The notes under the pieces are model-generated. The model did not search any database, had not been told where the DNA came from, and saw nothing but the letters and a program-made list of their open reading frames with translations. A DNA stretch of 63,980 bases, counting the filler, from Hyphochytrium catenoides (Eukaryota; Protista; Hyphochytriomycota): assembly GCA_900088475.1 (NCBI GenBank). It is 15 parts of 15 records of this genome, joined end to end, with 100 filler letters (N's around TTAATTAATTAA, not from the genome) between each part and the next. Parts side by side here need not be neighbours in the genome. Positions count along the whole stretch, not along the records: positions 49,316 to 54,264 come from FLMG01004078.1; 14 more parts are not named here. One strand, 5' to 3'. Shown here in pieces: positions 49,316 to 55,182 of the stretch (position 1 is the first letter of the stretch; each line of letters starts with the position of its first letter). The translations under genes were made by a program, and so were the position numbers.

Positions 49316-52300
49316 AAATTAGGGGAGAGGATGGGCGGGTGGTCAATGCCACGATATCTAGGCACCGGAAAGTAGAATCAGGGGCAAGAGGGGCAGCTGT
49401 TAGAGAAAAGAAGACCTTGCAGATACGTGCAAAGTATGAGGTGGATGGAGGTACAAAAGAAGAATCTGAGCACGGCTTTCCGCGCAGGTACTTGACGACG
49501 AGAAGGGACAAGGAGGAGAAGTCTTCAAGCTTGATGACGTAAAGACGAAGGTGCAGCACGGGGGCGTAGGACAGAGAAGTGAATGTTCAGAGAAGAAGAA
49601 AGACTATATGGGAAAGCACCCTGCCGGAGGGTTGGACATTGATGGGAATGGACATCATGGACACACGGCAGCAAGCGCTACGGACGTGTCAAAGGCAGAA
49701 GAGATGGAATCATTCTCCACCTTAGAAAGATGGTTCCTTGCGGCGTGAGCCGGAAAACCATGCTCTCGCCTCTCTTTATGCTTCCGTCCAGGCTCTTGAC
49801 TAGATGGTTAAGACCTTCAAAGTCCCCCCGAACTCGAGGCTGCAGAAGTGCTCTTAACGCTCGCTGGACGCTATAACGGTGCAGAGAGCGAGGAACACAA
49901 GGACGTGAACCCCAAGGATAAGGGTTAGTGGGACGCGAACTGACAAGTCATGACCAGTGGGACGACTAACGATAGAGGATTGAGGGAAGACAAAAAGCTG
50001 GGGGAGAAGGACCGAGAGGACAGCGGCAGGCAAAGAGAACAAAGGGATAGTCAGAAGAGTAATTCATGGAACATGGACAAAACGGAGGTTACGCAGAGTT
50101 CCACCGCTATTCACATCAACCCATGGACATAGAGTCAAGAAGTGACTAAAATAACGGACGATCAGCCAAGCTATATAGGGATCCGATAATGAGAAACAAG
50201 CCTGTCAGTAAAGAGCTGGGCCGGTCCACCAGTTCCCAAGCATAGAATGGCAAGGTTAAAAGTAATGGAAGAACTGAGAATAAGATGGACAGATTTGGAC
50301 AGAAGAGCAGTACCTAGACTTCGACATTCTCCTGCGGAAGGAGACAATGATAGTCTTCCTAAAGTTAGACTCTATCAACGTCTCGTAGAATGTCTAATCA
50401 TCGGCATGAGAGAGAAGATTATCGAGACAGCGGGAGGTAGCGCATTAGATGATTAGAAATTCGGCACAAAGGTAAATGCATCATCCTAAAAACCGGACGC
50501 TGGAGAGAGCAGCAGACGAGAGATAAACCCTGCAGCAGCTTAGTAACCGATCGGGAAACGTGAGAGGAGCCATTGACACTATTCTATCTTATCTTGCGTA
50601 TATCTTGCTCACCTCTTTCTTTGCCAAGTCACTAAGATCATAGCCGCTAAAGTCTGCCAACGCCCTCTCCGCTGTTTCAGCGTCAATATAGAATGCTACC
50701 GGAGAGCTGTCCGACCATGATGCTACAGAGTAACGTAACAAAAGGAGGAGGATCTAAGCCGCGAGAAGGAAAGCAGGATAGCTGGGTTGAGGAGCATTCA
50801 ATGAAGGAGAGAGCTAAAGGAGATGTATAACTCACGGTCTGAGTACCCTGGAATCTGTGTAGCCACTCCTACGAGCTGGTCACCATTCGACAAAGTTGCC
50901 GGGAAAGTGACGCCGGCGACAGGCTCCTTCATAGGGCCGAAGGTCTAAAAAAGGTAAATTAGTGATATAGTGTGACAAACAGACAGAGAGAGAGAGTGTG
51001 TGTGTGAGAGAGAGAGAAGAGAAAAGGAAAGAAGACCGCTTTAGGGGCGATGACCTGGAGCTACGAGAGTAGGAACAGAGAGGAAGCGAAAATCAAGAAA
51101 ATAAACACTTTATAGAACCATTGAGATTGCATGTGAAGCAGGACAAAACGGCAAAAAGAGCGAGAGAAGGGGGAAACTAATAGCAAAGACGTCTTTACGC
51201 TTTCGTACCATCTTTTGCTCTGCTTTGGTGTCTGAGAATAGCTTCATTGAGCTAAGCGAGGCACTTCCTTCCTACAGCACGCAAATTGATTCACAGCGTT
51301 AGGCTAATGAGTGGAAAGGGAGAGGCAAGAAAGAAGGAGAGACAGACACACTACATGGACTCTCTCTGTCTCTCTCATCCTTACTATCTCCTTTCTATGT
51401 TCTTCTCGCAAACGCTCCAGCCTTCCGGTTGCCTGCTTCTCTCTCTTACCTCAAGCGATGCTCCTGCTGCCTTGAAAGCTTTGACCCACTTCTCTCTGTC
51501 TTCCCTGGAAGGCGCACAGAGCACCAGCCTAAAGGCCTGTGAAGTGAGCATCATCCCGTACTCTCCCATGCTATTCATCCCGCGCTTGGGGTCGTCAAAC
51601 AGCTTAAGAGTTGTCTCAGACGCCTTCAAATCGAACTGACAGAGCATTGGAGAGTGGGAGAAAGCAGCAAAGCGATACACCGAAGGAAGAAGCGAGGAAG
51701 GTTAGTTCGTTATACAAACAGGGGATTGAAAGGGCGCCTTGAAGGGATTAAGGTCATTGGTCAGGGAACTACAAGCCGATTTAGGATGAGCGGCAACAAG
51801 CGAAGCGAGAGAGGGGGAAAGGAAGCGGGATCTGTAGAGCCGTACGGAGGACAGAGTACAATGCTTATCACCGCCTGAAAGAAGATTGAGACAGGGTCCA
51901 GAAGAATACATTAATGAAGGCAGTGACTAGGGTCAACCATAGAGAGAGACAGAGGACAAAACACATCCGAAAGAGGTCAGAGGAGCAAGTAAGAAATGAA
52001 TGAAGAGCTGTTCGCGGCTCTACCTCGTTCTTCACTCTAAGTTTATCGTCAACTGAGAGGTGAGACAGGAAGTAAGCGAACAGGAATTAAGCGACTTGAC
52101 GGAGTGATAAGAGACTCTAACGAGAGGAGAAAGATGAAGAAAGACGGGAATGCACCGGGATCAGGGCATACCCTGGAAGCAGCTAGAATCATAGGAGGGC
52201 AAAAGAGGAAGAGAGGAAGAAAAGGACAACCAGAGAAAAGAGAGAAAGAGAGAGATATAGACAACTAAGGACTGATGACAACAAAGGACAAGGGGAACTG

Positions 52301-52734
52301 ATGCTTACTGCATAGCAAGACAGAGTTGGCATAGAGCGCAAAGGTACGAGTCTTCCATGTCTGCAAACCGAGAAACAATCGAGAGAAGACGGCAAAGTTT
52401 AGTAGAGGTCAAGGTCTGTATGAGGGACAAGAAAAGAGATGGAGGAAGTTTGATAGACGGAGGAGATGTCATGGATGAGAGGGAGTCGCAGTGCCGCTCA
52501 GAATGATGGCAATCAGCACGTGACGAAGTCCTCCAAAACGGGCAAAGAGAGCGAGAGACAAACAGACGGACACACAGACAGACATCGTCTATGGAGATAG
52601 AGTAAGGTTACATGAAAGGTCTTTGCTCTCTTCGCAAGTTTGCCGTGCATCAGAAGCTTGTCTCCCACTCCAGAGACTGATGAGCCCTTCGACAGAGTTC
52701 TGCCCGTAAGGGGCATCGTAACGCTGTAGGACAT
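49316..52734 (-). CDS. PH domain + chalcone-isomerase-like (CHI/FAP fold) fusion protein, 10 exons, 3' partial
   Basis: Phase-consistent GT-AG exons: 52734-52612, 52360-52309, 52052-52024, 51635-51450, 51271-51209, 50944-50836, 50722-50613, 50393-50314, 49870-49721, 49357-49316. PH: MHGKLAKRAKTFHTWKTRTFALY...LCAPSREDREKWVKAF. CHI-like: KEPVAGVTFPATL...LVGV...AFYID...FYETLIESNFRKTI...LQPRV...IKRGESMVF...ILSPN. Confidence 0.8.
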
Positions 52735-53661
52735 CCTTCGGCCTCAATTCTGTATCTCTTTCTCTATCTCCTTTTGGCCCTGTGGGCCATTGCATCGAAG
52801 CTTCTTAAAGGTCAGCCTCCAACCTGCTGAAGCCGGCAGGAGAGCAGTGGCAATTTTTAGGTGTGCTGATGGTCAAGGTCCGGGTCGGTGACGGGGGGAA
52901 GGACAGAGCAGACAAGAAAGCATAAAGGACAGAGCAAGACTTCGGACTCAATCAGCAAGTCGAAGAAGCGGACAAGTGAGACAAAGATAGCTTGCCTACA
53001 TAGTTCCGGCCTGCTGAGTCTTCATGCTTGCCAATCAAGCAGTCTGCATCCTCTCATGAGGATCACACGGGAGAGAGATCTTGGGGACAAAAGCCCAGCG
53101 ATTAGCAGCGCATAAGGTTCTGGACAGACAAAGCTGCAGTGACCATCGCTGCTCAAGCTGCGGGAAGAAAGAGAATCACGGAGAGCTGATGGGGGGAGGA
53201 GGAAGAGAGAAGAGAGATAGCTGAGCTTGAAAGGGAGAGAGAGAGAGAGAACAAGGAAGAGACAGTTCCTTTCTTTCTCTTCTCTTCTCTTCCTCTTCGC
53301 TCTGACATTCAACATGTACACATCAATACAGGCCTCCCCCGGTATCAGATAAAGCTACTTGATGAGTGGTCGGTTATTTTATAAAATGCCTATTCAGTTA
53401 TCAAAGCCAAGCTCTCTCATGCCGTATTACTATTTTTAAAGGCTTACTGCTAATCAAGGGAAGAACACTCACATAGATATATTACTAATGATTAGCAGAG
53501 CTTGCTTTCAGTTTCCTTCCCTACTATTTTTACTTCCTCGGGGTAAAAGCAGCCGAATAGACGGAGATCACTGTATTACTAGTGGTTGCCTAGACAGGAA
53601 ATGTGGCCTTCTGACACTACTTCTGGGCACCAAAACCAAAGGGCAAGAAAGGAGCGAAAAA

Positions 53662-53721
<60 letters not shown>

Positions 53722-55182
53722 AAGAGAGAGAGAATGGAAGAGAGAGAGAGAGAATGGAAGAGAGAGAGAGAGAAAGAGAGAGAGAGGAGAGAATGGAGAA
53801 GAAAAGAGAGAAAGAGAGAAAAGAGAGAGTGAAGGAGGGGAGAGAGAGAGACAAAGAGAGAGAGCGAAGCAGAGAGAGAGAGAGGACAGACAGAGCAAAT
53901 GGGCAAGATTAGGCACAAGAAGTTGAACTCGTTTTCTCTCTCCCTCTCGTGTCTGTCTCCTGTCTCCTCACTACACTCCACCTTGCCACTGTGACGCCCA
54001 GTTCATGCAGCCGCAGCCTCTTGTCCCCAGCAGCCTCTGCTGGGTTCCTCCTCCTTCCAAGAGCCAACGTGATTGATCTTCTCTTCTTTGGCAGCACTTG
54101 GACAGCTTCTCTCTCGGTCTCAAGAGCGAACGAGCTGCAGATTTAACAGCCGTAGACAGGCGATTGGCTGTCTTTCCTTTCCTCTGCCCCAGCGGCGTCT
54201 CTCTTCTTCATTAGATCGAGCTGGACGGTCGATGGTGCCCAAGTGGATCATTGCCTGGGGTCTCNNNNNNNNNNNNNNNNNNNNNNNNNNNNNNNNNNNN
54301 NNNNNNNNTTAATTAATTAANNNNNNNNNNNNNNNNNNNNNNNNNNNNNNNNNNNNNNNNNNNNGACAAGACAGAAAGAGAGAGAGAGGGGGGAAACTAA
54401 GAGAGAAAGGAGAGAGAGGGAGAGAGAGGTAAAAAGTGGCTCAGGTGAGGTCTTATACAAAGGATGTGGGTGAGGGTGCAAGAGGGACGATCGAGTGCGA
54501 GAGAGACCTGTGTCCTCAGAGAGAGAGCCAGAATCTATCGTCAGAGCAAGAAAGAAAAGGGAAACAGAGAGAGAAAGAGAGAGAGAGATGGATCTATCCA
54601 GGGTTAATAAGCCTGACAACCAAAGAGAGAGAGAACAAGAGAAGAAAGAGAGGAGAGAGAGGGGTGGAGAGAGAGAGAGAAAAAGAGAGAGAGAACAAGA
54701 GAGAAAGAAGAGAGGAGAGAAAGGGAAAGAGAGAGAGAGAAACAAGAGAGAGAGAGAGAGAAACAAGAGAGAGAGAGAGAAAGAGAGGAGAGAAAGTCCC
54801 AACATCCGGACCAAAAGATATTTGACACTTTTCTGAGAGAGGAGAGGGGGAGCTGGACCGGATATTACTACTTCAAATAACCCTATTAAATCTAGAGTAA
54901 GAATTACACGTACTACTATATGATAGCCGTTACCCTCCCACTGATAAGGAAAGCTATTATTTTGAGCTTAGCTAATAAATCTATAATTCAGATAGTATAT
55001 TATTACTCCTCTTCTTGGTCATTCCCTTCTTGGCACAGTAGCCGTACTGATTACAGTATAAGAGGAACAGTTCTGCATCTTATTATGAATATGTTCACCC
55101 TTTTTGCTCTTTCTAGCTGCATTTTTAGTGCTCGTGGCGTGTCAAGCTGTTGACGTCCAAAGTGGGGCTGCAACTTAGAAAA

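Follow-up and report, generated by a model that had tools for sequence, protein, structure and literature searches.

In the 63,980-nt stretch of Hyphochytrium catenoides DNA considered here (the window), positions 49316–54264 form the piece that was analysed, and its minus strand carries a split gene that is cut off at the piece's edge (49316). This gene would encode a pleckstrin homology (PH) domain followed by a divergent domain of the chalcone isomerase (CHI) fold that lacks the family's conserved Arg, and the product may be a membrane-recruited binder of a hydrophobic ligand. Taken as a whole, including a real spliceosomal gene, this reading stands at an even chance. The best explanation includes a predicted soluble protein of two domains, at least 314 to 335 residues long and without signal peptide. 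A linker of about 25 residues, made of exon 5 (E5) and the start of E6, would lead from the PH domain to a putative non-catalytic CHI-fold domain encoded by E6 to E9 and the 3' end (exons are listed in Table 1).

Three-frame reading and an explicit check of the junctions gave nine exons spanning 52734 to 49721, which together hold 902 nt, or 300 codons, with 0 in-frame stops. All introns are of the GT..AG type and 113 to 443 nt long, with pyrimidine-rich (C/T)AG acceptors, and the phases form an unbroken chain from E1 to E9 (0/0, 0/1, 1/0, 0/0, 0/0, 0/1, 1/0, 0/2 and 2/2). An in-frame stop is found upstream of the start codon of E1, at 52746–52744. A chain of spliced exons with matching phases had been proposed in an earlier note on this DNA, and it was recovered here free of stops, with a tenth exon that is also in phase. 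The exons were chosen by reading the protein, and they coincide with compositional islands: pyrimidines make up 46.1% of the coding strand in exons (0.461), versus 66.5% in introns (0.665). When nine intervals of the same lengths as the exons were placed at random 20,000 times, none (0) of the placements matched this contrast (z 4.5), so the exon chain is more than chance. Pfam, PDB, atlas, profile and relative searches were made exon by exon, the joined spliced protein being used for the stop count only.

On the transcribed strand, the introns within 49721–52611 have a pyrimidine content of about 67% and include low-complexity CT/GA stretches, a strong asymmetry that may help delimit exons elsewhere in the genome. 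Locally, the segment 51380–51449 of the E4–E5 intron (minus strand) has a pyrimidine content of 0.22 to 0.30, and in intron 2 a 15-nt unit, ACAGGAAGTAAGCGA, is tandemly duplicated (52065–52094), 13 nt upstream of the E3 acceptor. Three further candidates were rejected as exons: a micro-exon of 10–11 nt near 52170; SSSITFNLAILCLG... at 50270, for want of a donor in a compatible phase; and YVIKLEDF...RGKP at 49540–49316, a long open frame without acceptor and of intron-like composition.

There is little doubt that exons 1 to 4 encode a PH domain (about residues 25 to 130), and we regard it as established. E1 and E2 read GDKLLMHGKLAKRAKTFH / TWKTRTFALYANSVLLC, the beta1–beta3 hallmark with K..K-x-R, and on reading of the sequence alone the basic K-Xn-(K/R)-X-R motif of the phosphoinositide-binding PH subclass is present across them, as GKLAKRAKTFH / TWKTRTF. 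The C-terminal amphipathic helix of E4, with its conserved Trp, matches the helix that caps the seven-strand PH sandwich. Pfam PH (PF00169) was found in E4 alone (19.5 bits, E 0.0015, profile positions 80–103 of 105), a score under the gathering cut-off of 25.1 bits, as would be expected of one part of a domain that is split here over four exons. With E4 as query, phmmer against the PDB listed the same helix of the cytohesin and GRP1 PH domains (E about 1). An AlphaFold2 model of E4 alone (pLDDT 66.8) consists of three strands and a helix, and Foldseek placed it on the dynamin PH domain at TM 0.66. E1 alone gave no Pfam match and no relevant PDB phmmer match. Motif reading, the E4 matches and the model with its Foldseek result all support the PH domain proposed earlier.

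For the C-terminal half (E6 to E9), homology to the CHI fold is quite probable, as judged by two independent lines of sequence evidence, each of them weak: the language-model neighbours of E9 and colinear matches to a family profile. When E9 (49 aa) was the query of a language-model atlas search, a single family or clan accounted for the ten best named matches, and the four listed were all Chalcone families (PF02431, PF16036 and PF16035; recognition 2365). The search thus names, out of thousands, the family that had been proposed beforehand.

The profile was obtained by way of L-N-G-A-G-x-R, a motif of bacterial CHI-like proteins. When bacterial genomes were scanned for this motif in the form of a degenerate 21-nt pattern, 57 open reading frames (ORFs) of about 170 residues came up; 6/6 of those checked were PF16036, with E 1e-41 to 1e-56 and the whole profile covered. 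An alignment (A1) and a hidden Markov model (HMM) of this Chalcone_3 family were built from 55 of the 57. The best local alignments to the HMM were at profile positions 5–19 for E6, 45–48 for E7, 60–61 for E8 and 95–128 for E9, and are thus colinear, with VAGVTFP of E6 falling on VaGVkld and IKRGESMVFRLTPQGT of E9 on vkkGdvltldyvpgtGT. Each exon was shuffled 3,000 times, which gave an empirical p of 0.008 for E9, 0.023 for E6, 0.18 for E8 and 0.62 for E7. Of the 3,000 shuffled sets, 7 attained the summed score (p about 0.002), 17 were colinear and none (0) combined the two. Alignment to the Chalcone_3 profile with hhalign gave P 0.0067 for E9 (columns 101–128) and P 0.015 for E6 (columns 4–19). 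All the motif strings on the earlier note's list are present (EPVAGVTFP, LVGV, FYID, FYETLIESNFRKTI, LQPR and KRGESMVF). Its description of the C-terminal half as CHI/FAP-like holds as far as the Chalcone neighbours of E9 and the colinear matches of E6 to E9 go, but no family threshold was reached. The proteins recovered with this pattern number in the dozens and are secreted bacterial Chalcone_3 proteins (among them loci L024, L037, L029, L075, L083 and L059), for the most part of Burkholderiales; the Verrucomicrobial one, L059, passes Chalcone_2 as well (31.3 bits).

Plant FAPs use the conserved Arg to hold the fatty-acid carboxylate. The same residue is catalytic in CHI and affects haem binding in Aim18p and Aim46p (PMC9996372). 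In the bacterial alignment A1 the Arg of NGAGxR is invariant, in part as a consequence of its inclusion in the pattern by which the sequences were found. The equivalent stretch of the H. catenoides gene, at the E6/E7 junction, reads LVGVATQIPGYSD / PSWSDSSPVAFYID. After K6 of E6, the next Arg or Lys is the Arg in AERAL of E7, and the family's conserved Arg is absent. Both the replacement of the Arg segment, by ATQIPGYSD / PSWSDSSPVA across the junction, and the loss of the Arg itself had been noticed before and are borne out. As read here, the predicted protein is neither a CHI enzyme nor a FAP-type carboxylate binder, and it is not obviously an Aim18p-type haem binder.

Several observations, given below with the alternatives on which they bear, weigh against a PH–CHI protein. 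An ATG is present at 50932, 12 nt inside E6 and just ahead of the first family motif; E4 reads through its own donor (VRERSRQPEGWSVCEKNIERR) to a stop at 51384; and the E4–E5 intron is the only one with an exon-like, purine-rich composition (pyrimidine 0.44). All three favour two adjacent genes on the same strand, one for a PH-only protein (exons 1 to 4, ending at 51384 or after E5) and one for a stand-alone CHI-like protein starting at ATG 50932 (MKEPVAGVTFP...). So do the stand-alone architecture, which is the usual one of the family, and the mature domain of bacterial members, which starts at the same motif. But two genes would leave only about 450 nt for a 3' end and a promoter, most of this interval is intron-like in pyrimidine richness (0.71 to 0.80), and E5 is open in frame and bounded by good splice sites. 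The three exons are also compatible in phase: E4 ends and E6 begins in phase 0, and both E4-E5-E6 and E4-E6 keep the frame, so that E5 could be skipped. The E5–E6 intron, at 0.71 pyrimidine, is like the other introns and unlike 53300–53660, the AT-rich and unskewed stretch taken as intergenic. Two separate genes are unlikely. Fusion of the PH and CHI-like parts in one transcript, for which the phases and the intron-like make-up of the interval speak, is probable. A PH-only isoform, or a gene end at the 51384 stop, is possible. The fusion claimed in the earlier note thus gains from the phases and the interval, and the internal ATG and the read-through of E4 tell against it.

The fold of the CHI superfamily is an open-faced beta-sandwich that carries a helical layer. 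As to the match of the present gene to it, no CHI exon reached a Pfam or PDB threshold (Pfam exon by exon up to E 10; phmmer against the PDB). PH on E4 was the sole Pfam match, and E6, E7, E8 and E9 found nothing relevant in the PDB, including no solved CHI/FAP structure. The atlas search's own calibration rates the result for E9 (score 0.85, 163 shared features) as no more than a lead, and E6 as query was uninformative (recognition 1577). E7 and E8 were singly not significant in the Chalcone_3 profile test and gave no signal with hhalign, the E8 match being an artefact of one sequence's tail. The fold predicted for the 49-residue E9 fragment had a pLDDT of 59, and the PDB and atlas structure matches of this fragment were meaningless. 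The C-terminal half could be real and fused to the PH domain and still be another alpha+beta domain, its CHI resemblance being convergent or due to chance. The missing thresholds point that way, as do the absence of the defining Arg motif and the unrecognised E7, E8 and 3' pieces. Against it, two different methods single out one and the same family among thousands, with the matches placed and ordered as expected, and a domain of another kind is distinctly unlikely.

A search of 1.8 billion representatives with E9 returned nothing but seven proteins with repeats, of the kind of a YadA stalk or RRM repeats, and no self copy. It follows that the organism's proteome and close orthologues are absent from this library, and 49 residues cannot detect distant ones. 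Word searches with the E4 open frame and with E9 in its open frame, made under a length filter that excludes full-length proteins whenever the query is a stop-free piece of this gene, found nothing, and a metagenome scan with E4 gave only 18-residue chance matches in gut bacteria. A word search seeded with the Verrucomicrobial Chalcone_3 protein returned only relatives of at least 74% identity.

The 3' end can be read in two ways. In the first, E9 is joined in phase to a tenth exon, with donor AG/GTGGAG at 49721/49720 and acceptor tgcctag/ at 49361/49360, and the protein continues R-YRGIDHPPILSPN to the edge of the piece; the 'I.SP' motif of the earlier note is found in this reading. This splice needs no base correction, but it drops 19 residues that resemble the last strand and helix of the fold. 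Right after ...GTIFL, the -1 frame reads KVENDSISSAFDTSVALAAVCP followed by a stop (49723–49658), an open, helix-like stretch of 22 codons, which, as a lead only, resembles the end of the family's domain, its last strand and helix ('IENK..SSAV' in plant CHI; 'I.G..F..AL' in bacteria). In the second reading a base is added at CTA^AAG, and a donor GCCGT/GTGTCC (49665/49664) comes into phase with the last exon to give ...ALAAV-YRGIDHPPILSPN, which echoes W-L-G-x-x-P; G153 and P156 of this motif are invariant in A1. The F...W-L-G-x-x-P helix motif, near-invariant in A1 (F143), may have counterparts in SSAF of the -1 frame piece and YRGIDHP of the candidate last exon, without statistical support. 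Uncorrected, E9 reads through to ...GTIFLRWRMIPSLLPLTRP and a stop at 49680–49678. The pyrimidine content of the two short 3' pieces (0.61 and 0.67) is intermediate to intron-like. A sub-profile of the bacterial C-terminus gave no significant match and did not discriminate between the readings, and PDB phmmer and hhalign with the -1 frame piece gave no relevant match and no signal.

The 3' end would require a one-base correction, or else a splice by which a core helix is lost, and the out-of-frame stretch suggests either a true frameshift at CTAAGG (49723) or an assembly error of one base there. That the gene is a decaying or lineage-restricted pseudogene with a true frameshift in E9 is quite improbable: the helix-like stretch KVENDSISSAFDTSV lies one base out of frame directly after E9 and no orthologue was found among the 1.8 billion representatives, but nine exons have intact frames and splice sites, the alternative splice restores the frame without correction, the missing base could equally be an assembly error, and the 49-residue query detects only close relatives.

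The putative fused protein can be compared with three groups of known proteins. With plant FAP1-3 and bacterial Chalcone_3 (PF16036) it shares a non-catalytic domain of about 170 residues that opens with an E-[PV]-x-G-V motif, a basic strand in mid-domain, a K-[KR]-G-[DE]...G-T hairpin and, for E6 to E9, an alignment in order to the Chalcone_3 profile, at a similarity under every family threshold. Unlike them, it has no conserved Arg (NGAGxR in bacteria) and is fused to a PH domain, whereas they are stand-alone behind a transit or signal peptide. Yeast Aim18p and Aim46p, likewise non-plant CHI-fold proteins, are mitochondrial haemoproteins anchored in the inner membrane; they keep the Arg, whose mutation lowers haem binding, and have neither CHI activity nor FAP-type fatty-acid binding (PMC9996372). 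The lack of both activities in these two proteins indicates that the CHI fold is functionally plastic. In contrast to them, the H. catenoides protein has no targeting sequence and no Arg, and carries a PH domain.

CERT, OSBP/ORPs and FAPP2 are transfer proteins in which a PH domain is combined with a lipid pocket. As far as can be told from sequence, their order of PH domain, flexible linker and candidate lipid-binding domain in a soluble protein is found here too, but a CHI fold would take the place of START, ORD or GLTP as the pocket. Read by eye, the linker showed no clear FFAT motif. The E5 linker (51209–51271) contains LFSDTKAE, with F and D at the spacing of the FFAT core (EFFDAxE) and without an acidic tract, which is too weak to call.

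The PH domain, with its K..K-x-R in beta1/beta2, may recruit the protein to a phosphoinositide-bearing membrane, where the CHI-fold pocket would bind a small hydrophobic ligand, the protein acting as a sensor or carrier. The strand that bears the Arg appears to be replaced by an S/P/D-rich stretch, and because the Arg is missing and its strand replaced, the ligand or its binding mode should differ from those of CHI enzymes, FAPs and Aim18p/Aim46p. A soluble, phosphoinositide-targeted CHI-fold protein whose pocket, without the anchoring Arg, would bind a different hydrophobic ligand is put forward as a tentative and rather doubtful proposal.

A literature search, which did not extend to domain-architecture databases, found no relevant link of chalcone isomerase with pleckstrin homology, and we know of no description of a PH plus CHI-fold architecture. 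With moderate confidence, and on the strength of this absence from the literature, the pairing is plausibly a new domain architecture.

Table 1. Exons and candidate 3' pieces of the putative PH–CHI-like gene (positions along the window; a slash marks a splice junction).
Feature	Positions	Strand	Description
E1	52734–52612	minus	ATG at 52734; 24-residue N-terminal stretch, PH beta1 and basic loop GKLAKRAKTFH; donor CAT/GTAACC; exon-like composition
E2	52360–52309	minus	TWKTRTFALYANSVLLC; PH beta2–beta3, W-K-x-R-x-F hallmark; ends in phase 1; acceptor ggtttgcag, donor GTAAGC
E3	52052–52024	minus	29 nt, (I)DDKLRVKNE; PH beta3–beta4 region; acceptor cctctcag, donor GTAGAG; phase 1 to 0
E4	51635–51450	minus	62 aa, C-terminal half of PH domain; helix REDREKWVKAFKAAG with conserved Trp
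E5	51271–51209	minus	21-aa linker EGSASLSSMKLFSDTKAEQKM; 63 nt, symmetric phase 0/0; exon-like pyrimidine content 0.40
E6	50944–50836	minus	Start of CHI-like domain, KEPVAGVTFPATLSNGDQLVGVATQIPGYSD; strong acceptor ttttttag; internal ATG at 50932; NGAGxR Arg absent
E7	50722–50613	minus	(P)SWSDSSPVAFYIDAETAERALADFSGYDLSDLAKKE
E8	50393–50314	minus	TFYETLIESNFRKTIIVSFRRRMSKS; ends in phase 2
E9	49870–49721	minus	(S)VQRALRALLQPRVRGDFEGLNHLVKSLDGSIKRGESMVFRLTPQGTIFL
Candidate E9 continuation, -1 frame	49723–49665	minus	KVENDSISSAFDTSVALAAV; would fit the fold's last strand and helix, but only with one base lost at 49723
Tenth (candidate last) exon	49360–49316	minus	(R or V)YRGIDHPPILSPN..., incomplete at the edge of the piece; resembles family W-L-G-x-x-P; intron-like composition 0.67

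Upstream of the gene, 53664–53895 is taken up by a (GA)n microsatellite, which is imperfect (74% matches) and has about 120 copies. The adjoining segment 53300–53660 is AT-rich, without strand skew, and is probably an intergenic or promoter region. Beyond the microsatellite, at 53896–54264, the plus strand is richer in pyrimidine (0.60) and no convincing ORF was seen; there are hints of a divergent transcription unit running off the piece from 53896.

Proteins of the CHI fold comprise plant enzymes, plastid fatty-acid binders, chalcone synthase enhancers, fungal mitochondrial haemoproteins and secreted bacterial proteins, all of them, to our knowledge, of a single domain. The value of the present case is limited for now, as it rests on one locus. 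If the reading is true, a cytosolic CHI-fold protein that is tied to a PH domain and lacks the Arg needed for the known activities would widen the range of uses of the fold, and would offer a handle on the ligands of ancestral non-catalytic CHI-fold proteins. The CHI fold would then be a further type of cargo domain in PH-guided sensors or carriers of lipids or metabolites, built on the same design of PH domain, linker and pocket.

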